NCBI GenBank assembly: GCA_965240325.2
Contig: OZ251239.1
Span: forward strand, 1,550,001 to 1,614,000
Direction of reading: 5' to 3'
From: Rebecca billardiae RCC1528
Lineage: Eukaryota; Protista; Haptophyta
Length of the DNA stretch: 64,000 nucleotides
This document shows, piece after piece, positions 72-28,488 of the stretch; the first letter of the stretch is position 1, and the number at the start of each line of letters is the position of its first letter. Position numbers and translations under genes: made by a program. The notes beneath the pieces were generated by a model. That model saw nothing but the letters and a program-made list of their open reading frames with translations, ran no database searches and was not told the origin of the DNA.

Positions 72-1289
72 GCGGCCTAGAACCGAGCTAGTTAGAGTAT
101 GATTGACCGATCCGGACAGCGGGCACTGAGAGCGGGCGCCAGTCAACGTCGGAGAAATCAATAAAACGGAGCCACCGCACACCAAGACATGCACGTCGAG
201 GTCGCCCGATCGCGCTCGGCTCCGCGGCGAGCCCCCGGCCCGGGCACTCGGCGTCGGACTGGAGCGGGCCTGCGCGCCGCGGCAGCGCGCGGCGCGCGGC
301 GCGCAGCGCGCGGCGGGGACTGTCACTTGTCAGTCGTCTCAGACTCTGACCACTGACACGTCGAGGTCGTCATCGCGCTCGGCTCCGCGGCGAGCCCGCC
401 GGGCATGCACGGACTGGAGCGGGCCTGCGCGCCGCGGCAGCGAGCGGCGCGCAGCGCGGTGGCGGCGGCGCGGACGGAGTCTCGGGGCAGCGCACGCGCA
501 GGGTGCGTGATGAATGAATCTTGCAGCAGCTGCAGGTTGTGCGGCTCCGTCGAGCCCATCGTCGCGACGCGAAGGACAGTAGACGAAGACCAGCTTGAGT
601 GAGCACGGCCTGCGAAGTGCGAGCGAGTCGACCGGGAACAGTCACGGGTCGCGAGTGCCACTCGCCCAGAAGCGACGTCTGCGGCCTAGAACCGAGCTAG
701 TTAGAGTATGATTGACCGATCCGGACATCGGGCACTGAGAGCGGGCGCCAGTCAACGTCGGAGAAATCAATAAAACGGAGCCACCGCACACCAAGACATG
801 CACGTCGAGGTCGCCCGATCGCGCTCGGCTCCGCGGCGAGCCGCCCCGGCCCGGGCACTCGGCGTCGGACTGGAGCGGGCCTGCGCGCCGCGGCAGCGCG
901 CGGCGCGCGGCGCGCAGCGCGCGGCGGGGACTGTCACTTGTCAGTCGTCTCAGACTCTGACCACTGACACGTCGAGGTCGTCATCGCGCTCGGCTCCGCG
1001 GCGAGCCCGCCGGGCATGCACGGACTGGACGGCGGGCCTGCGCGCCGCGGCAGCGAGCGGCGCGCAGCGCGGTGGCGGCGGCGCGGAGTCTCGGGGCAGC
1101 GCACGCGCAGGGTGCGTGAATGAATCTTGCAGCAGCTGCAGGTTGTGCGGCTCCGTCGAGCCCATCGTCGCGACGCGAAGGACAGTAGACGAAGACCAGC
1201 TTGAGTGAGCACGGCCTGCGAAGTGCGAGCGAGTCGACCGGGAACAGTCACGGGTCGCGAGTGCCACTCGCCCAGAAGCGACGTCTGCG
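72..1289. repeat. Near-identical tandem duplication, 2 x ~609 bp
   Basis: gcggcctagaaccgagctagttagag starts at 72 and 681; both units end ...agcgacgtctgcg. Only small indels between units; each unit also has an internal repeat. Confidence 0.92.
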
Positions 1290-19825: not shown

Positions 19826-20047
19826 CTTGCGCGCCCCGCCGCCAGTGGCGCCAATCGACGTTTCCTCAGTGTAGGCGGGCGAAACCACCTCGTCCAGCCA
19901 AAGGAAGAACAGCTGAGCACGAAAAGCAAGCTGGCTTTTTATTGCCTTTTTCCCCGCCGCAGCGCGGGAAAATCACGCGGGGCAGCCCTGGGCACACGGC
20001 ACACGACGCGGCACGTAGCAGCCCGTCGCGTCGGCGCGCCCGGCACG

Positions 20048-21724
20048 ATGGCGAGCGATGGCGGCGGCGCGGAGCAGCAGGTGATCGTCCGGCTCGTCTC
20101 CGAGCTGCCCGAGCTGCAGGTCGCCGACGAGCCCCTCGAGATCCCCGCCAAGCTCACGCGCTTCGGCCTGTCCGAGCTCGTGAATCATCTGCTCGCGCGG
20201 AGCCCGCCGATTCCGTTCGACTTCCTCGTGGAGGGCGAGCTGCTGCGCACCTCGCTGCGCAAGCTGATGCTGCTGCGCAGCATCTCCGGGGTGCGTGGCG
20301 GCCGCGCCCCCCTGCGCGCGCGCGCCGCGCGCCGCCCCTGCCTGCCGGCGTGCCGCGCGGCTCGCGCGCGCGCCGCGCTCACTCGCGCGCGCGCGCGATC
20401 CGCGCTGGCACGCCGGCGCGCGGCCTGGCGCGCAGGAGTCGGCCGTGGAGCTGCGCTATTTCCCGATGCTGCAAGAGCCCGAGCAGGCCGTCGAGCGGCC
20501 GCACGAGGACTGGGTCTCCGCCCTCCACAGCCGGGGCAGGTGCGCGCGCGCGGGCGCGACATCGGCAGGCGCCCTCGCACGGGCGAGGCGCGCCGCACCG
20601 CTCCCGCGGCCACACGCGCGCCCGCCCGCCCGCGCGCCCGCTGCGGCGGCCCGCACGCCCGCAGGCTCGTGTCGACCGGGAGCTATGACGGCGTCGTGCG
20701 CATCTGGGACGGCGAGCGCGTGCACGCGCTCATCCCCGCGCACGGCGCGCCGGTGAAGGCGGTGGCGCTGCTGGCCGCAGCGCACGGCGCGGCCGGCGGC
20801 GCGCTCGCGGACGATGCGGACGGCGACGCCTTCGGTGCGGACGGCGAGGGGAGCGTGCTCGTCGCGTCGGCGTCGCAGGACGGGACGGTGCGCGCGTGGG
20901 CGGTGGACGCGCGCGGCGAGAGCGTCGCGGCCGGCGTGTGCGCCGGGCACGAGGGCTCAGTCAACGCGCTCGCCGCGGCGGCGGCGCCGGGCGGCGGCGG
21001 CGGCGGCGGCGCGCGGCTCGCCAGCGGCGGCTGGGACGGGACGGTGCGGCTGTGGGAGCTGGGGGCGAGGGCGGGCGGCGCGGCGGCGGAGGCGGCGGCG
21101 CACGCGGGCGCGACGCCGCGCGAGCGGAAGCGCGCGCGCAAGCCCGAGCCCGCCGCGCCGCCGCCGCTCGCCGCCTCCGCAGTGCTGCGCGGGCACACGC
21201 AGCCGGTCTCGGGCGTCGCGTGGGCGGGCGCGGAGCCGGGCGGCCGGCTGCTGAGCTGCAGCTGGGACGGCAGCGTGCGGCAGTGGGACGTGCTGGGCGC
21301 GCAGTGCGTGGCGAGCGTGGGCAGCGTGAAGGGCGCGCTCGCGCTCTCCGCCGCGCACGCCGACCCCACGCGCGTCGCCACCGCGCACGACAACGGCGCC
21401 GTCCAGCTGTGGGACCTTCGGGCCAAGCCGAGCGAGGCCGCGACCGCACGGCTGGCCGCACACGACGGCTGGGCGAGCGCCGTGGCCTTCTGCGCCGCCG
21501 CGGAGCACCAGCTGCTCAGCGCGGGGCACGACGGCGCGGTGAAGCTGTGGGACGCGCGCGGGCGGCTCCCGCTGCACACGCTCGCCGAGCACGCCGACAA
21601 GGTGCTCTGCACCGGCTGGGGCGGCGCAGACGGCCGCGAGATCCTCAGCGGAGGCGCCGACTGCAAGCTGCTCGCGCGCGCGCTGCCGCCGGCACACGCC
21701 GAGAGCCTCGCGCAGAGCCGGTGA
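20048..21724 (+). CDS. WDR12: Ribosome biogenesis protein WDR12/Ytm1; 3 exons, introns 20291-20435 and 20540-20664
   Basis: NLE domain LTRFGLSELVNHLL...PIPFDFLVEGELLRTSL; HEDWVS; TGSYDG; WD40 repeats ending HADKVLC...SGGADCKL. Confidence 0.93.
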   Translation: MASDGGGAEQQVIVRLVSELPELQVADEPLEIPAKLTRFGLSELVNHLLARSPPIPFDFLVEGELLRTSLRKLMLLRSISGVRGGRAPLRARAARRPCLPACRAARARAALTRARARSALARRRAAWRAGVGRGAALFPDAARARAGRRAAARGLGLRPPQPGQVRARGRDIGRRPRTGEARRTAPAATRAPARPRARCGGPHARRLVSTGSYDGVVRIWDGERVHALIPAHGAPVKAVALLAAAHGAAGGALADDADGDAFGADGEGSVLVASASQDGTVRAWAVDARGESVAAGVCAGHEGSVNALAAAAAPGGGGGGGARLASGGWDGTVRLWELGARAGGAAAEAAAHAGATPRERKRARKPEPAAPPPLAASAVLRGHTQPVSGVAWAGAEPGGRLLSCSWDGSVRQWDVLGAQCVASVGSVKGALALSAAHADPTRVATAHDNGAVQLWDLRAKPSEAATARLAAHDGWASAVAFCAAAEHQLLSAGHDGAVKLWDARGRLPLHTLAEHADKVLCTGWGGADGREILSGGADCKLLARALPPAHAESLAQSR

Positions 21725-22182: not shown

Positions 22183-23571
22183 TCAGACGACAATCCAGCT
22201 GGTCGCGGCCTTGAGCGCGCTCCCCGCCGCCTCGGCGCGCATGCCGTGGATGTGCGCGGAGAAGGAGGAGCGAGCGTCCCCCAGGAAGAGCGCGGCGCGC
22301 GCGCACACCAGCTTCTCCGCCATCGCCGCCTCGAACGCGAGCTCGCGCGCCGAGAAGCCCAGCGCGCCGCCCGCGCTGCCGTTGGGTGCGTACACGTCGA
22401 CAAACGCCGACACGGCGAGCGGCGCGCGCGCCAGCCGACCCAGCTCTGCGCGCAGCGCGGCCACGTTGCGCACGCCCGCGCCCAGGTCGATGCGGCCGCG
22501 CGGCAGGGAGGCATGCGGCGGCGTGATCACGAGGAGGGAGCGCACCGCGCCGCCCGCCGCGGAGGCGTCCAGCTCCCTCACCACCGCCGCGGCGATGGCT
22601 GCCGGACTGACGAGGCGCTGCGAGCCGCCCCCGTGCAAGTCGCCGGTGCGCCAGTGCACGCACGCGTAGGGCGCGCGGAGGCCGTGCGCGCGGATGGCGC
22701 GCTCGAGGCGGAGCGCGACGGCGCGCGCCGGCGGCGTGAGCGGCGGGTGGCTGCACAGCTGGAAGAAGGGCGCCAGCCGCAGCTTGTACCGCAGGTCGAA
22801 CGCGTTGGCAACGAAGATGTCGCCCCCTCGCGCCTCGCGCAGCACCTCACCCACCCAGGGCCAACGCCCGCCGCCGCCGCCGCCGCCGTCGACGCCGCCG
22901 CCGCCGCCGCCGCCGTCGCCGCCGCCGCCGCCGTCGCCGCCGGTTGCACTCGCGTTTGAGTTGGAGTGGTGCGGTGGCGGCGCGGGGCGCATATACGGCA
23001 CGCGCGCGGCCGACGGCGGGTGCAAGGGCACGAACCACCGCCCCTCCACCGGCACGACGTGCACGGCGCGCAGCCGCACCGCACCGGGCGGCAGGCCACT
23101 GCCCGGCGCGTCGCGGCCACACGCCGCAACGTCGCACGCGCCATGCTCATTGTGCGCGCCCACGCCGTGCAGGTTGAGGCAGAGAGCGGTGGCGGCGGGC
23201 GCGCGCGCGCGCGGCCCGCCGGCGTCGACGCGCAGGGCATCTTCCGCGCGGATGGCCGGCGGCGGGCCGCCCTCCGCGCCGCCGGCCGCGCGGCCGGCCG
23301 CAGGCGTCGTCAGCGCGGAGCAGCGGCCGAGCGGCTGCGGCTGGAACAGCTCGAGGGCGGAGGGCAGCCGGCGCCGTTGGCCGCGCACGAAGGGCAGGCG
23401 CATGCCGCCGCACGGCGGCACGACGAGCTGGCGGCCGAGGAGCTCGGCGAGGAACCGGCCCATCTCGAGGGTGTAGAAGCAGTTCGACGCCTGGCCCGAG
23501 TCGGCGCTGAGGAAGAGCCGCGGCCACACGGACGCGCCCCGCTCCGAGCCCCGCTCCGAGCCCGGAGCAGC

Positions 23572-23647
<76 letters not shown>

Positions 23648-25020
23648 CCCTCCAGCCGCCGCCGCCGCCGCCACGCCCTGCTGAGCGCGCCGCGCAGCCG
23701 GCGCCGGGCACGGGCGAGGCGGCCTTTGGCCCGCTTCAGCGCCTTCTTCTTCCCCGACGCGTCGAGCGCGGCGATCTCCGCGGCGCCCCGCTCGTCTGTC
23801 GTGCACGGCACGGCTGCCCGCTGCTGCTGGGGCGCGGCCGCCGGCGCGGCGGCGGGCGCGGCGGCGGGCGCTGCGGCCACGAGCGCGTCGGGCACGTCGA
23901 GGGCGCGGCGATTGCCGTGCAGCGAGAGCCACGCGCCGTCGTGCATGCGGTTTGGGTCCGCGTCGAGCCCGCCGAGCTGCGACATCGCCACGCCCGCCTG
24001 GCGCCACACGCACGCCGCGACGCGCACGTCACCGCCTCCGCACAGCAGCCGCTGCGAGCACTCTGCCCACGCGCGCGCGTCGATGGCGTCGAGCAGGCCG
24101 CGGGAGAGGACGTACCCGCCGCCGCCGTGCGGCCAGACGCTCGGCGCGTCGAACGCCGAGGCGCACGCCGCCGCCCGCTCTCGGCACAGCGTCCACCCGC
24201 CGGCGTACTGCGCCCACGCATCTGCAGACGCGTCGGCGGCCGCGCCCGCGAGGCCGGCGGCCGCGCCCGCGCGCGCGCGCGCGAGCTCGGCGCTGCCGTT
24301 CCGCCCGCCGACGGGCCTGTTGGGGCAGTGGCCCCGCGGCAGCGGCGCGGCGGGGCCCCGAGCCGCCGGGTCCACGAGGCACGGCGCGAGCAGGGGCTCC
24401 GCGCAGCAGCTGCGCGTGCCGCCCCGAGGCACAAGCCGCCGCCCTCGCAAGCGGACGCGCGCGGACGCGCGCCGCGCCGCGCCGCCCGGCGCGCGCGTGG
24501 GCACCGGGCTGGCGCCCTCGCACGCGAAGGCCGGGCCGAACGGGCGGCCGAGGAACCACGGCTGCGTGTGGTCCAGCCGGCCCAGCGCGCGCGCGAGCCG
24601 CGGCAGCGCGAACGCCGTGTCGTCGTCGCCGACCACCAGCCACTTGAACGCGCGCTCGCGCGGCGCGCGCGCGTCGAGCGCGCGCGCCGCGCCGCGCGTG
24701 GCGTTGGCGAGGGCGATGGCGAGCAGCGGCCGCAGCGCGGACTTGCCGTCGGGCGCGGCGTTCGCCCAGCCCACCGCCGGGAACATGCCGTGGTCCGGCA
24801 CGGCCACCTGCGCGCGCGACGCGTTGGGCGCGTCCGACGCCACCATGTAGCGATAGCCGCGCAGCCACGTGGCGGTGGCGCGCGCGATGAGGGCGTCGCG
24901 GTTGCCGCAGAGGACGACGAGCAGGTCCTTGCGCGCATCCGGACGCTGCGCCGCGACACGACCGCCCTCGAGCTGCGCGCACAGCAGCAGCACTAGAGCG
25001 AGCCCGACGGCCGGCGCCAT
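22183..25020 (-). CDS. Two-domain glycosyltransferase: Fringe-like GT31 plus O-fucosyltransferase (POFUT-like)
   Basis: Signal/TM at N-terminus. GT31: KWLVVGDDDTAF, GGGGYVLSRGLL, GDVRVAAC. (PA)n linker. O-FucT: GQASN..LAELLGRQLVVPP, YACVHWRTGD, EKLVCARAALFLGDARSSFS. Confidence 0.8.
23575..23646. repeat. (GGGCGC)n hexamer repeat encoding the Pro-Ala linker
   Basis: About 12 direct copies visible. Confidence 0.9.
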
Positions 25021-25242
25021 CGTGATCCGGGCGTTCATCTCGGCAATCAATTAACGTCGAACGAGATTTACGAGAATACTAGATCCGGCGGTTCGCGACG
25101 CTATATTGCGCTGATGTACGTACATATTGCAGTAGCAGTAAGTACTACTACGCGACTATGTACACTCCGCGACTACGACGACTATGCTGATACTGCTACA
25201 GCGAACGACTCAGCAGCGCATCCGGAAGCGACGCAGCCGTCA

Positions 25243-26853
25243 TCATCCAGCCGTCCGAGCTATGAGGAGGCGTGTGCCCTTGCCCCGCGCGCACACGGCG
25301 GCCATCTCCGGGTCCACCGGCCGCGGGGGCGCATCAGTGCCACCCGCGCCGTGCGCGCTGCGGCGCCGCGTGCGCAGCGCCCCGCCAGCGCCAGCAACGA
25401 CGTCGGAGTCAGCGCCTGAGGCCGAGGCGTCATCGACACCTGCGGCTGTGGCGCTGCCGCGCGCGCAGCCCGCCGCCGGATGCGGGGGCGCAAACCGCCG
25501 CCGCGCGCACCGCTCGGCCTCGACGCGCGCGCGCGCCGGCTCGCCTCGCCCGCCACGCCCCGGACTGCCCAGGCAGGCGGACAGGACTCGGTCGTCCCAG
25601 ACAGCCGAGCGCTGCTCGGCGGCGCCTGCCCGCAGCGCGCTGGCCGCGCCACCGCCGCCGCCGCCCGCCGCTGCGGCGACGGCGTCCGGAGGCGCGGCCG
25701 AGTGTTGTTGGCGCACGCGCCGCGCCGCGGGGTGGCCCTCCCAGCCGTGCGCCACGGCGTACGGCTGCGGCGCGTCGGCGGCGAGCGAGACGAGCCGCGC
25801 CGCCGAGCCCTCGCCGCCGTGCGCCGCCGGCCGCCCCGCCTCCGCGCGCGCCCACGGCGCCAGCCCCAGCGCGCCCAGAGGGCCAAACTCGGCGGTGGAG
25901 AGCAGGACTGGGTGGGGCGCGCTGCCAGCGGTGGCCCACGCGGCCGCGAGCGCGGCGAGGCTGGGCGCACAGCGGGCGGCCGTCGCGTTGGCCACGCGCT
26001 CGAGCAGGCCGAGCACCGCACCGGCCGCGCCGTACATCGCGCGGGCGCTCACCAGCGGCAGCTCCGCCAGCGCGGCGCAATCCGCCGCCGCCGCCGCCGC
26101 CGCCGCCGCCTCCCGAGTCTCGCCGCCGCCGCCGCCGCCGCCGCGCGCGGCGAGCGCGCGCAAGCACGCGGCGCACGCGGCCTGGAGCGCCGGGCAGTCG
26201 CCGAGGTAGGCCGAGGTGCTCTCTGCGGGCAGCAGCACGCCGCCAAAGCTCGGCGTGCCAAACGGGTCGCCCTGCACGAGCGAGCCGCCGTCGAGCGCGA
26301 GGACGGCGTCGGCGGGCGGGGGCAGGCCGGCCGTCCCGCGCGCGTGGCGGCGCAGGTAGCGGGCCCACAGGCTGACGGCGGGCGGCGCCGCGGCCATCGC
26401 CGCGTCGGGCGCGCCGAGCTCGTCGGCGCGCACGCAGCGGACGCGCACGGCGGCGGAGGGCGCCGTCGGCAGGCGGCGCTCCACGTCGGCGCACGCGTCC
26501 GGCGCGTCGCGCGCAGGCGCCGTACTCAGGAGCAGGGCGATGTCCGCCGACGCGCTGCCGGCGCTGAGCGCGCGCACGAGCGCCTGGGCGGCGTCGGCGG
26601 CGTCGGCGGCCGAGGTGGCGAGGAGGACCAGGCCCCGCCCGCGCTCGTCGGGCGCGCGGTCCGCGTACGGCTGCGGCGCCAGCTCGAAGCGGCCGCTGCG
26701 CAGCACGCACGGCTGGCCAGGAGACACGCGCTCGGCGCTCGCGGCGCTGTCCTCGGCATCCATCGCCGCGACGGCGTCGGCGAGGAGGCGCACGAGCGCC
26801 GCGCAGCAGAGCAGGGTGAGGACAAGCGGCGCCGTCCTCAACGACGCCGCCAT
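25243..26853 (-). CDS. Secreted or type-II membrane protein, divergent glycosyltransferase-like
   Basis: N-terminal hydrophobic segment; VLALDGGSLVQGDPF and AVAHGWEGHP resemble degenerate GT-A family motifs. Confidence 0.55.
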   Translation of the reverse strand: MAASLRTAPLVLTLLCCAALVRLLADAVAAMDAEDSAASAERVSPGQPCVLRSGRFELAPQPYADRAPDERGRGLVLLATSAADAADAAQALVRALSAGSASADIALLLSTAPARDAPDACADVERRLPTAPSAAVRVRCVRADELGAPDAAMAAAPPAVSLWARYLRRHARGTAGLPPPADAVLALDGGSLVQGDPFGTPSFGGVLLPAESTSAYLGDCPALQAACAACLRALAARGGGGGGGETREAAAAAAAAADCAALAELPLVSARAMYGAAGAVLGLLERVANATAARCAPSLAALAAAWATAGSAPHPVLLSTAEFGPLGALGLAPWARAEAGRPAAHGGEGSAARLVSLAADAPQPYAVAHGWEGHPAARRVRQQHSAAPPDAVAAAAGGGGGGAASALRAGAAEQRSAVWDDRVLSACLGSPGRGGRGEPARARVEAERCARRRFAPPHPAAGCARGSATAAGVDDASASGADSDVVAGAGGALRTRRRSAHGAGGTDAPPRPVDPEMAAVCARGKGTRLLIARTAG

Positions 26854-26946
26854 CGTGAAGGCCGTGGCGCCGGGCGCCGAATGGCCAGGCGCCGTTCGCC
26901 CAACGGTTTGCGCAGGCACGGCCCGGGGCCCGGGCTCGTTCGAGCG

Positions 26947-28488
26947 ATGGCGGCTGACGACGAGCTGCGCGCGCCGCTCAGGGCGCACGCCGAGGTCGCG
27001 CCGCGCGCGGCGAGCGCGGAGGAGGCGCGGCTGCACCGCCGCGTGACGGCGTTCGCGTGCGCCGTCATCTTCTTCGACGCCGTCGAGGTCGGGCTCATCC
27101 TGCCCTCGCTGTTTGCGTACATCCAGGAGGCGGCGGGCGGAAGGCTCTCGGCCGCGCACGCGTCGCGCACGTTCGGCGTGGCGCTCTCGGTGTTCTCGGC
27201 GTCGAGCCTGGTGACGCAGCCGCTGCTCGGGTACATCGCCGACCGCACCTCGTACCGCCTCATGTACGCCGCCTCCATCGCGCTCGCCGTGCTGGGCAAC
27301 GGCGTGTACGCGTGCGCCGGCCAGTGCGGCGCGCTGTGGATGATAGTCGCCGGCCGTGCGGTCGCCGGCGTCGGCTGCGCGAACACGTCGATCACGTACG
27401 CGTACGTGGCAGCGGTGCTGCCGCGCGAGGTGTGCACGCGCACGATGGCCGTCGTCCAGGCCTTCTTCTCCGTCGGCCTCATCCTCGGGCCCGCACTCAA
27501 CGTGCTCACCGCCGCGGCGCGCGGCTCTGTGCTCGGGCTGCGGCTCGCGCCCACCAACGCGCCCGGGCTGCTCGTGGCGGCGCTGCTCGTGGTGCTGCTC
27601 GGGTGGGTGCTGCTCGCGTTCCCGGAGCCGCCGCCGCCGCCGCGCGCCGCCGCCGCCGCCGCGCGCCCCGCCCGCCTCGGCGACGTGTGGCGGCGCGAGT
27701 GGTGGCGCGGGCTGCGCGCGGAGCTGTCCGGCTCGCTCGCGGGCGTGAGCCTCGCGACCGGCTTTGCGTTCATGGGGACGGTCAGCCTGATGAACAACCT
27801 GTGCGTCGCGGCGGCGAGCCTCGCGTTCGCGCTGCGCCCGCTGCACGTCTCGCTCCTCTTCGTCGGCAGCGCGCTCGAGGTGCTCACCCTCTCGCACGCG
27901 GCGGTCGTGCCGCTCGTGCGGCGCGGCGCGTCCGACCGCGCGCTCGTGCTCGGCGGCGGCGCGTGCGCGACGCTCTCGCTCGGGTACGCGGCGCTCACGT
28001 GGCGGTACGGCATGCGGCTCGTGCACCTGGCGGTCGGGCTGGCGCTCTCGTGCGCGGCGATCCCGTTCGTCTTCGCGCCCAACCGCGCGCGCTTTGCCAA
28101 GGCGGTCGAGGGCTCGCCCAACCACGCGCTGCTGCAAGGCGTGCAGGGCGTGGCGAGCGACCTCGGCGCCATCGCCGCCCCGCTCTACCTCGCCGCCTTC
28201 CTCGGCGCGCCGCCCGCGCCCGGGAGGGGCATCGCGACCGGCGCGACCGGCGGCATGGCGGTGCTGTACGCCGTGCTCGTCGCGTGGGACGCGCGCGCTA
28301 CGAGCGGCGCGCCCGCCGCCGCCGCCGCGCGCGCGCGCTGGAGCCGCGCCGCCGAGCAGGATGGCGCCGATGCGTCGGAGGCGCGCGGAGCGGCCGCCCT
28401 CACGCGACCGCCGCCGCCGACGGTGCCGATGCAGCCGACGGGCAGCCTGGGCAGGGGCGGGCGCACGCCGCCAAGTGCGACGGCCTGA
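26947..28488 (+). CDS. Major facilitator superfamily transporter (MFSD8-like)
   Basis: About 12 hydrophobic segments; motif A PLLGYIADRTSYR; GRAVAGVG; GLILGPAL. Confidence 0.9.
   Translation: MAADDELRAPLRAHAEVAPRAASAEEARLHRRVTAFACAVIFFDAVEVGLILPSLFAYIQEAAGGRLSAAHASRTFGVALSVFSASSLVTQPLLGYIADRTSYRLMYAASIALAVLGNGVYACAGQCGALWMIVAGRAVAGVGCANTSITYAYVAAVLPREVCTRTMAVVQAFFSVGLILGPALNVLTAAARGSVLGLRLAPTNAPGLLVAALLVVLLGWVLLAFPEPPPPPRAAAAAARPARLGDVWRREWWRGLRAELSGSLAGVSLATGFAFMGTVSLMNNLCVAAASLAFALRPLHVSLLFVGSALEVLTLSHAAVVPLVRRGASDRALVLGGGACATLSLGYAALTWRYGMRLVHLAVGLALSCAAIPFVFAPNRARFAKAVEGSPNHALLQGVQGVASDLGAIAAPLYLAAFLGAPPAPGRGIATGATGGMAVLYAVLVAWDARATSGAPAAAAARARWSRAAEQDGADASEARGAAALTRPPPPTVPMQPTGSLGRGGRTPPSATA

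Follow-up and report, generated by a model that had tools for sequence, protein, structure and literature searches.

Does a single algal polypeptide combine two glycosyltransferases that act on one glycan? As far as we know, extension of O-fucose in animals always falls to a GT31 enzyme, with Fringe following POFUT1 and B3GLCT following POFUT2, and these enzymes are separate proteins. A preliminary description of the window (the whole 64,000-nucleotide stretch of DNA analysed here) had proposed that a Fringe-like GT31 domain and a POFUT-like O-fucosyltransferase domain are encoded there in one uninterrupted ORF behind a signal anchor.

Gene structure and N-terminal segment

The coding sequence lies on the minus strand at 22183..25020 and comprises 945 amino acids plus the stop codon, with no intron detected in the ORF list, the sequence, or the GC3 profile. 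It runs from an ATG at 25020 to a TGA at 22183-22185. The first ATG in the frame is found slightly upstream, at 25038, and gives a 951-aa alternative, and the open frame is bounded at its upstream end by a TAA at 25051-25053. ORF length alone is weak evidence here, because at 77% GC ORFs of 300 to 900 codons occur in all six frames. Scored in 90-nt windows between aa 6 and aa ~930, GC3 in this frame never leaves the range of 0.80 to 1.00 and is 0.90 to 1.00 across the interdomain linker, and GC drops to 46 to 60% on both flanks of the gene. The measure was validated on the neighboring WDR12-like gene, where it detects an intron or frame switch as a collapse of GC3 to 0.37 to 0.70. Given this profile and the independent homologues of both halves, the observation of a single, stop-free fused ORF is confirmed as more than chance. 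We rejected a continuation from the upstream same-strand ORF (25243-26706) on account of the stop at which that ORF ends, the spacer of 46 to 56% GC behind it, and the separate signal sequence predicted for the fusion protein.

The protein begins with a hydrophobic segment (aa 1-20; 24961..25020, minus strand) that is predicted, from Kyte-Doolittle hydropathy, to be a signal peptide or short signal anchor. The 19-residue mean exceeds 1.5 at aa 1-5 only, and no second peak occurs elsewhere, the linker included. Since the hydrophobic stretch spans just ~13 residues (aa 5-17), the segment resembles a cleavable signal peptide more than it does a type-II anchor; the hydrophobic N terminus of the earlier proposal is thus present, but its assignment as an anchor is not favored. 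Read from its sequence, the locus is a single nuclear gene without introns, belongs to a eukaryotic alga of high GC content, and encodes a predicted secretory-pathway protein of ~945 aa.

Identity of the two domains

The N-terminal half carries a GT31 (Fringe/B3GLCT-like) domain of the predicted GT-A fold at aa ~30-365 (23926..24933, minus strand), recognized by Pfam Fringe, phmmer, and a search of PDB with the profile of family alignment A2. The Pfam Fringe model (PF02434) scores 29.9 bits on the whole protein and 33 bits on the N-terminal half, against a gathering cutoff of 21, with an alignment confined to a core of 43 residues at the DDD motif; 11 of the 13 A2 family members also match this model. 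In the phmmer search, the N-terminal half matched human B3GLCT. Among solved structures, profile A2 retrieves B3GLCT as the best match (E value, 1.9e-14), followed by CHSY3 (1.8e-8) and Manic Fringe (2.8e-5), and it also matches a fungal GT31 and C1GALT1.

Three motifs, all on the minus strand, characterize this domain. The DDD (DxD) motif (aa 132-134; 24619..24627), by family a metal- and nucleotide-sugar-binding site, has D132 and D134 invariant in A2 and aligns with the DDD of B3GLCT in both phmmer and the profile comparison. GGGGYVLS (aa 299-306; 24103..24126), with G299, G300, and S306 invariant, aligns in the profile comparison with the GG-rich motifs at the equivalent place in B3GLCT and CHSY3. 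Downstream of it, the GT31 acidic motif GGGDVRVAAC (aa 328-337; 24010..24039), in which R333 is invariant and D331 and C337 are nearly so, is aligned to EDVEVGRCV in CHSY3. A variable Cys-rich insert separates DDD from GGGG, and its CC/C anchors are conserved in homologues. By these sequence criteria the N-terminal half is a GT31 domain, nearest to B3GLCT among solved structures and with its DxD and GG motifs preserved, and the GT31/Fringe identity originally proposed is upheld.

The domain is followed by a low-complexity, repeat-rich linker of ~125 residues (aa ~376-500; 23521..23895, minus strand) that contains no Met, stop, or hydrophobic segment. In order along the protein it holds an (AAAP)4 repeat (23830-23877), a highly basic predicted helix (23653-23751), and an (AP)12 tract (aa 459-482; 23575-23646) encoded by a perfect 6-bp microsatellite of 12.5 copies, all on the minus strand. 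The linker also contains RRRRR, at which the protein may be processed.

The C-terminal half (aa ~501-945; 22186..23520, minus strand) is a POFUT-fold GT-B domain, assigned through profile, AF2, and fold matches, that belongs to an unnamed family outside Pfam. It fails the Pfam O-FucT (PF10250) threshold, with 10.4 bits (E value, 0.48) against a cutoff of 31.5, and of 10 homologues of the domain 2 match that model at an E value of ~0.05 and the others not at all. At least 20 homologues are found among the 150 matches listed; they are shorter proteins, mostly of 380 to 540 aa, and none of those listed contains a GT31 domain. When the profile of the C-domain family alignment (A1) is compared with PDB, POFUT2 chains are the only significant match (E value, 4.7e-4), and hhalign relates the domain to a PF10250 protein of the same genome (E value, 2.7e-5).

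Structure prediction points in the same direction. Single-sequence AF2 gave a pLDDT of 34, and the model used was the one built with alignment A1 (pLDDT, 67; pTM, 0.72). With this model, Foldseek places POFUT1 and POFUT2 on top, and VIA-align yields Z scores of 20.4 for POFUT1, 19.5 for POFUT2, 15.8 for FUT8, 14.6 for NodZ, and 13.1 for AtFUT1, with the next unrelated fold below 9. All matches with a Z score of at least 12.7 (rows 1 to 43 of the list) are GDP-fucose-dependent fucosyltransferases. Viral fold matches of the domain are annotated as O-fucosyltransferases, and the nearest ESM Atlas clusters, commonly haptophyte, carry PF10250.

The conserved positions of the C-domain, again all on the minus strand, follow this fold. 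Its N-lobe motif LFLSADSGQASNC (aa 502-514; 23479..23517; family consensus, GRxSNC) is conserved across A1, although the fusion protein has Q where most relatives have R, and is followed by LVVPPC (23410-23427); the family shares this order, a G-x-x-S/T-N-C loop and then L-V-x-P-P-C. G42 and N43 are named N-lobe loop residues of CePOFUT1 (PMC13010939), and the GRxSNC loop, compared by eye, may be equivalent to the loop that they occupy. Between the two lobes lies a poly-Gly/Asp insertion (aa 694-718; 22867..22941) encoded by a CCG trinucleotide array, predicted as a loop with pLDDT below 50 and missing from most homologues in A1. CVHWRTGD (aa 787-794; 22639..22662), with its C, H, W, and R invariant in 19/19 A1 sequences, holds Arg791, a candidate catalytic and phosphate-binding residue. 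The predicted C-lobe phosphate-binding motif RSSFSAHI (aa 917-924; 22249..22272) has an invariant H and nearly invariant S, F, and S. In the profile comparison these two motifs align with the HxRRxDF and S(T)F(S/T) motifs, respectively, of human and Caenorhabditis elegans POFUT2, and the H-x-R and S-x-F-S/T positions also align with the PF10250 protein of the same genome.

Judged from the model, the C-terminal half adopts the GT-B fold of POFUT1 and POFUT2 and retains the HWR arginine and SSFS; together with its relatives it makes up a small POFUT-fold family that has no name and lies outside Pfam. The O-FucT identity first put forward consequently stands at the superfamily level, through the POFUT2 profile match and fold Z scores of ~20, and fails at the level of Pfam PF10250. 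The overall architecture was correctly described as one polypeptide with an N-terminal GT31 domain, a repeat-rich linker, and a C-terminal POFUT-fold GT-B domain, and all of the motifs named at the outset (DDD, GGGGYVLS, the (PA)n linker, HWRTGD, and SSFS) are present. Two catalytic-type glycosyltransferase domains, each with its motifs intact, are encoded in one frame and predicted to lie on the same side of the membrane.

Occurrence and genomic setting

None of the 150 matches listed (206 at an E value of ≤0.001) in a search of 1.84 billion representative proteins is a second fusion of GT31 and POFUT-type domains, and our literature searches found no description of one. Fringe was not found beside the GT31-free homologues of the C-domain in the four loci inspected (L006 to L009), of which L006 and L008 have short upstream DNA and are indecisive. 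Metagenome scans with the whole protein and with alignment A4 returned nothing apart from one incomplete locus (L010), and a scan of viral contigs returned no match. Word-index protein searches, whether by the whole protein, its C-lobe region, or A1, were uninformative, probably as low-complexity words filled the candidate lists. As the fusion was found in no other organism searched, the Rosetta-stone argument made for it rests on one gene.

The genome fuses glycosyltransferase domains freely. Algal relatives of the N-domain are joined to other glycosyltransferase-like or methyltransferase domains, and the varied fusions seen in this genome and in relatives include Fringe with a weak GT47 signal, Fringe with methyltransferases, and TPR with O-FucT. 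The C-domain itself has a copy number of 1. The gene is flanked by the ribosome-biogenesis WD40 gene (WDR12-like) and an MFS transporter, and we rejected a viral or foreign origin because its composition matches that of these neighbors. With regard to donor supply, the genome encodes a GDP-mannose 4,6-dehydratase above the family cutoff. With regard to acceptors, a six-frame search of the genome detected no TSP_1 (thrombospondin repeat) domain; this weak negative leaves a TSR acceptor unsupported.

Proposed function and its alternatives

We favor, with a probability of roughly 55%, a fused enzyme in which both domains are active, tethered in one lumen, and acting on the same glycan. Tethering in the ER or Golgi lumen would bring both domains onto one glycan, either on protein Ser/Thr or as a glycan acceptor in its own right. 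The sugar moved by the C-domain would be a 6-deoxyhexose in alpha linkage, most likely fucose donated by GDP-fucose, and catalysis would be inverting, metal independent, and reliant on Arg791; we infer 6-deoxyhexose transfer because all solved relatives of this fold carry it out. The GT31 domain, using a UDP-sugar and the metal bound by DDD, would attach a hexose or HexNAc in beta-1,3 linkage. Together they would yield Hex-beta1,3-Fuc, the unit that POFUT2 and then B3GLCT make in animals. In general terms, the enzyme would transfer a 6-deoxyhexose (probably fucose) and a beta-1,3-linked sugar, either one after the other or in alternation. Plant GT106 enzymes of the POFUT fold transfer rhamnose from UDP-rhamnose onto polysaccharide (PMC13010939, PMC7343896), so that the sugar transferred need not be fucose and the acceptor need not be a protein.

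Of the known systems, POFUT2 (GT68) followed by B3GLCT (GT31), which act on TSRs in animals and apicomplexans, provides the best solved sequence match of each half. POFUT2 shares the H-x-R-x-x-D-F spacing of the C-domain, whose profile significantly matches no other PDB chains, and the pair is lumenal and combines the same GT-B and GT-A folds that are predicted for the fusion protein. In contrast, POFUT2 and B3GLCT are separate, whereas here one chain carries GT31 and then POFUT, with a C-domain too diverged for Pfam O-FucT. The pair acting on EGF repeats, POFUT1 (GT65) and then Fringe (GT31), includes the top fold match of the C-domain (POFUT1, with ~300 of 350 residues aligned), and the N-domain passes Pfam Fringe, yet Manic Fringe is a weaker match than B3GLCT. 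These two are likewise separate proteins in animals, unlike the fusion, and to our knowledge a Notch-type system is not expected in an alga. Two transferases in one chain, working on one glycan in succession or in alternation, are familiar from chondroitin synthases (GT31 and GT7), LARGE (GT8 and GT49), and EXT (GT47 and GT64); of these, CHSY3 has a GT31 domain that the N-domain matches significantly. A beta-1,3 transferase and a fucosyltransferase also share one chain in PgtA of Dictyostelium and Toxoplasma, whose beta3-GalT and alpha2-FucT domains (GT2 and GT74) act on Skp1 in the cytosol. We know of no pairing of GT31 with a POFUT-fold domain in any of these. Plant GT106 enzymes (RRT, FRB1) together with RGGAT (GT116), likened here through published descriptions, offer a POFUT-like GT-B domain with an equivalent arginine, a second glycosyltransferase, and a disaccharide repeat, but differ in donor (UDP-rhamnose), acceptor (pectin), their separate proteins, and a partner that is not GT31 (PMC13010939, PMC7343896).

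The same two activities might instead alternate in a single-chain co-polymerase. It would build the backbone of a polysaccharide of the cell surface or of scales from a repeating disaccharide of 6-deoxyhexose and a sugar in beta-1,3 linkage. Parallels exist in CHSY, with its GT31 and GT7 domains, in LARGE and EXT, and in the plant pair of RRT and RGGAT, which polymerises RG-I. The significant match to CHSY3, the fusion of algal N-domain relatives to glycosyltransferase-like or methyltransferase domains, and, as a weak negative, the failure to find a TSR acceptor domain in the genome would all agree with such a role, as would the polymerization of RG-I in vitro by POFUT-fold FRB1/RRT8 with RGGAT1 (PMC13010939). 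However, the closest sequence and fold matches, B3GLCT and POFUT1/2, are enzymes of protein glycans and no polymerases, and we consider polymerization possible but doubtful, although the sequence does not separate it from priming followed by extension.

The fusion may also be opportunistic, with the two domains acting uncoupled on unrelated substrates or with one half serving as a noncatalytic binding or chaperone module, a chaperone role being known for Drosophila OFUT1. Such an origin would fit the many glycosyltransferase fusions with varied partners in this genome and its relatives, the uniqueness of the join in the data searched, and a linker made of young, perfect microsatellites. We nevertheless think it quite unlikely, as neither half has lost its catalytic motifs, which agree with the positions invariant in the respective family, and the uniformly strong codon-position bias over both halves argues against decay. 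Far less probable still is a gene-model artefact, in which two adjacent genes or an intron-bearing gene read as one frame at 77% GC. Spurious ORFs of 300 to 900 codons do occur here in all frames, and the WDR12-like neighbor stays stop-free through its intron or frame switch; at that site, however, GC3 collapses, whereas in the fusion it never falls, and the low-GC spacer seen on both flanks is absent between the halves. The C-domain also lacks a Met from which to start, given that no in-frame Met occurs between aa 359 and aa 520, the latter already beyond its first conserved motif, and there is no second hydrophobic segment. The long insert between DDD and GGGG is a family feature with conserved cysteines, and, with both domains in the same frame, any intron would be a multiple of three and the fusion retained anyway. 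On the strength of the GC3 continuity, the missing Met, and the neighbor-intron control, we rejected the two-gene and intron models.

Returning to the coupled enzyme, what is new is the combination of GT31 with a POFUT-fold domain, two-domain glycosyltransferases being known as a class. A true Rosetta stone, whether it performs POFUT2-type O-fucosylation and then B3GLCT-type beta-1,3 extension in an alga on an acceptor other than TSR or makes, as one chain, a new repeat polymer that contains fucose, seems to us unlikely; if true, the pairing of POFUT fold and GT31, which animals show twice, would be a more general, possibly older functional module. The fusion in a distant alga would provide genetic evidence for cooperation of the two folds outside animals, and a single compact protein would allow their coupling to be tested in vitro. 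A further result is a small POFUT-fold family, as yet unnamed, that Pfam misses, and the work adds to the picture of an algal genome that builds its glycan assembly enzymes via domain fusion.

A single reading frame for two domains

The fusion gene lies in a stop-free frame on the minus strand (window 22183-25050), preceded by a TAA (25051-25053), with in-frame ATGs at 25038 and 25020 and a TGA at 22183-22185; counted from the ATG at 25020, the protein comprises 945 aa. The GC content of the window is 60-78% and ORFs of hundreds of codons occur in all six frames around the locus, so the length of the fusion gene alone is no evidence of a gene. As a coding test, GC per codon position was computed in 90-nt windows. 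In the fusion-gene frame, position-3 GC keeps within 0.80-1.00 between aa 6 and aa ~930, with position 2 staying below, and total GC drops to 46-60% directly upstream (25050-25240) and downstream (<22215). The neighboring, convergent WDR12/Ytm1-like gene (NLE plus WD40 repeats; window 20039-21724, plus strand) served as a control. Its ORF continues without a stop across an intron or frame switch at ~20350-20530, and ORF length is therefore misleading in the Rebecca billardiae genome. Over that same interval its position-3 GC goes down to 0.37-0.70, precisely where the frame is left, so in this genome the measure does respond to an intron or a frame switch.

It is very improbable that two genes, or a gene-model artefact, have been read as a fusion. 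Codon-position GC, with the WDR12-like gene as positive control, reveals no intron or frame switch inside the fusion gene, and no 90-nt window within it resembles the low-GC flanks. The sole hydrophobic segment of the protein is aa 1-20, with none in the linker, and the in-frame Met codons at aa 346 and 359 are followed only by one at aa 520, which is already beyond the first conserved motif of the C-domain (aa 502-514). Both domains share a frame, and therefore an undetected intron would be a multiple of three and keep the fusion regardless. The single uninterrupted ORF proposed in the preliminary description is thus borne out.

The linker (aa ~376-500, minus strand) consists of (AAAP)4, a segment at aa 424-456 that is strongly basic and closes with RRRRRL, and (AP)12, the last encoded by a perfect 6-bp microsatellite (window 23573-23647; 12.5 copies, 100% identity). 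In addition, a 25-copy CCG array (window 22868-22942) encodes a stretch of poly-Gly inserted at aa 694-718, within a C-domain loop that AF2 models with low confidence. Both coding repeats are likely length-polymorphic; as every repeat has a period divisible by three, slippage preserves the frame.

A tandem ORF of 487 aa (window 25243-26706, minus strand) lies ~220 bp upstream, with a signal-peptide-like start and position-3 GC at 0.90-0.98 along most of the ORF. It has no Pfam match; the ESM Atlas clusters closest to it often consist of hypothetical proteins from haptophytes, and there is a single faint Nucleotid_trans (GT77-like) hint. It may encode another glycosyltransferase adjoining the fusion gene. 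Divergent from it is an MFS/sugar-transporter-family gene (window 26869-28488, plus strand; MFS_1, E 6.7e-21).

Family and fold of the two halves

The Fringe-like GT31 assignment of the N-half proved correct. Pfam Fringe (PF02434; cut-off, 21 bits) scores 29.9 bits with the whole protein and 33 bits with the N-half alone, in an alignment that spans only ~43 residues around DDD, and phmmer against the PDB matches human B3GLCT. Most of the 206 matches in an exhaustive phmmer scan covering 1.84 billion representative proteins fall on this half, and those sampled show Fringe or DUF604 signals. An alignment of 12 such matches with the query has D132, D134, G299, G300, S306, and R333 invariant and D331 and C337 nearly so. 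As a profile against the PDB, it ranks B3GLCT first (E 1.9e-14), followed by chondroitin synthase 3 (1.8e-8), a fungal GT31 (7.7e-7), C1GALT1 (2.6e-6), and Manic Fringe (2.8e-5). By sequence, the N-half is a GT31 domain whose motifs are intact. DDD and GGGGYVLS lie unusually far apart in the family as a whole, separated by a variable insert that is rich in Cys and anchored by conserved CC and C residues; the reading of this insert as an intron was rejected on this ground. The nearest relatives of this half are themselves fused: one (P0008) carries a weak GT47/exostosin signal, two (P0004 and P0009) have long C-terminal extensions of no assigned family, and another (P0058) has two methyltransferase domains. 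In algae, the Fringe-like module is a frequent fusion partner.

For the C-half, described beforehand as a POFUT-like O-fucosyltransferase, the relationship to POFUT stands, whereas the Pfam O-FucT family assignment does not (10.4 bits, E 0.48; cut-off, 31.5). About 20 proteins in the scan match it, the best (P0001) at 42% identity. Their alignment (19 sequences) contains an N-lobe loop with the consensus GRxSNC (GQASNC in the fusion protein) followed by LVVPPC, an invariant C-x-H-W-R, and AEK...C...RSSFSxHI. Its profile retrieves only POFUT2 chains from the PDB (E 4.7e-4 to 1.8e-3), covering the H-x-R-R-x-D-F and S-T-F-S/T motifs, and hhalign relates the family to a genuine PF10250 member encoded in the same genome (E 2.7e-5). 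The nearest ESM Atlas clusters belong to PF10250 or other fucosyltransferase families. An AF2 model built with this alignment (pLDDT 67, pTM 0.72) places POFUT1 and POFUT2 first in Foldseek, then FUT8 and AtFUT1. In VIA-align, POFUT1 scores Z 20.4 (296 residues, rmsd 3.5), POFUT2 19.5, FUT8 15.8, NodZ 14.6, and AtFUT1 13.1, with unrelated folds at Z <9; viral fold matches are annotated as O-fucosyltransferases. Because the POFUT2 profile match, the PF10250 alignment, and the fold matches agree, we assign the C-half, as modeled, to the GT-B fucosyltransferase superfamily as a diverged member nearest POFUT1/POFUT2, of a subfamily missed by Pfam.

Occurrence of the pairing

A protein with both domains would sum both scores and therefore top the scan; none was found among the 150 of 206 matches listed, the top ones having one domain each. 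A local HMM search finds the C-domain in 20 of these 150 and not in the other 130, and the GT31 domain in none of the 20, the longest of which has <=542 aa. These homologues come from ENA, Logan, JGI, and one NCBI assembly, under uninformative names. No Fringe-like sequence surrounds the four whose loci were extracted (L006-L009): L006 and L008 hold too little upstream DNA to weigh as evidence, L009 has 8 kb, and in L007, a compact 372-kb eukaryotic contig, an opposite-strand gene lies 96 bp upstream. Neither the fusion protein nor any close relative occurs in the public collections searched, where the best match covers one domain at 42% identity, and metagenome and viral scans add nothing further on the fusion.

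In its own genome (72 Mb, 41 contigs), the C-domain is single-copy, GT31-family matches occur at ~8 further loci, and four other ORFs pass PF10250, with no GT31 in the two examined. On the contig of the fusion gene, an 805-aa ORF (L013:1260-3677, minus strand; G000:C22:232936-234630) has two tandem Fringe-like GT31 domains, recalling the two-domain layout of B3GLCT. A 913-aa ORF (L011:2363-5104, minus strand; G000:C3 about 2230479-2231606) combines TPR repeats with an O-FucT domain (PF10250) recognized by Pfam, a layout like that of SPINDLY, which is TPR plus GT41 and differs in its fucosyltransferase fold.

Two-domain glycosyltransferases are already known (CHSY, LARGE, and EXT); PgtA is another. 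The pairing of GT31 with a POFUT fold is new relative to the literature searched, where it was not found, and to the protein set sampled.

Proposed activity

From sequence and model, the product is a predicted single lumenal chain that links a GT31 module of GT-A type to a POFUT-fold module of GT-B type, with putative catalytic motifs intact in both. The C-domain would transfer an alpha-linked 6-deoxyhexose, most likely fucose, since GDP-fucose is the donor for all solved relatives with Z ~13 or above. The genome encodes a GDP-mannose 4,6-dehydratase, which makes a supply of GDP-fucose plausible; a six-frame search of uncertain power found no TSP_1 repeat. The GT31 domain would add a beta-1,3-linked sugar, and tethering would let both domains act on the same glycan. 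We favor, at a probability of roughly 0.55, the two domains acting consecutively on a single glycan, and take prime-and-extend as the default mode: acting once, the enzyme would yield a Hex-beta1,3-Fuc unit, the product type of POFUT2 then B3GLCT.

Repeated action of both domains would instead build a disaccharide-repeat polymer. We consider this less probable, yet it has good precedent: the GT106 enzyme FRB1/RRT8, which has a POFUT fold and UDP-rhamnose as donor, polymerizes RG-I jointly with RGGAT1 (PMC13010939; PMC7343896), and chondroitin synthases carry a GT31 domain. Sequence does not separate polymerization from prime-and-extend. That the domains are uncoupled or partly noncatalytic seems unlikely.

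The weight of the finding is limited in that the fusion comes from one genome, of a lineage with a habit of domain fusion, and is known here as DNA. Its main draw for glycobiologists is a striking coincidence: the halves match both enzymes of a single animal pathway, the C-half best matching POFUT2 and the N-half B3GLCT.
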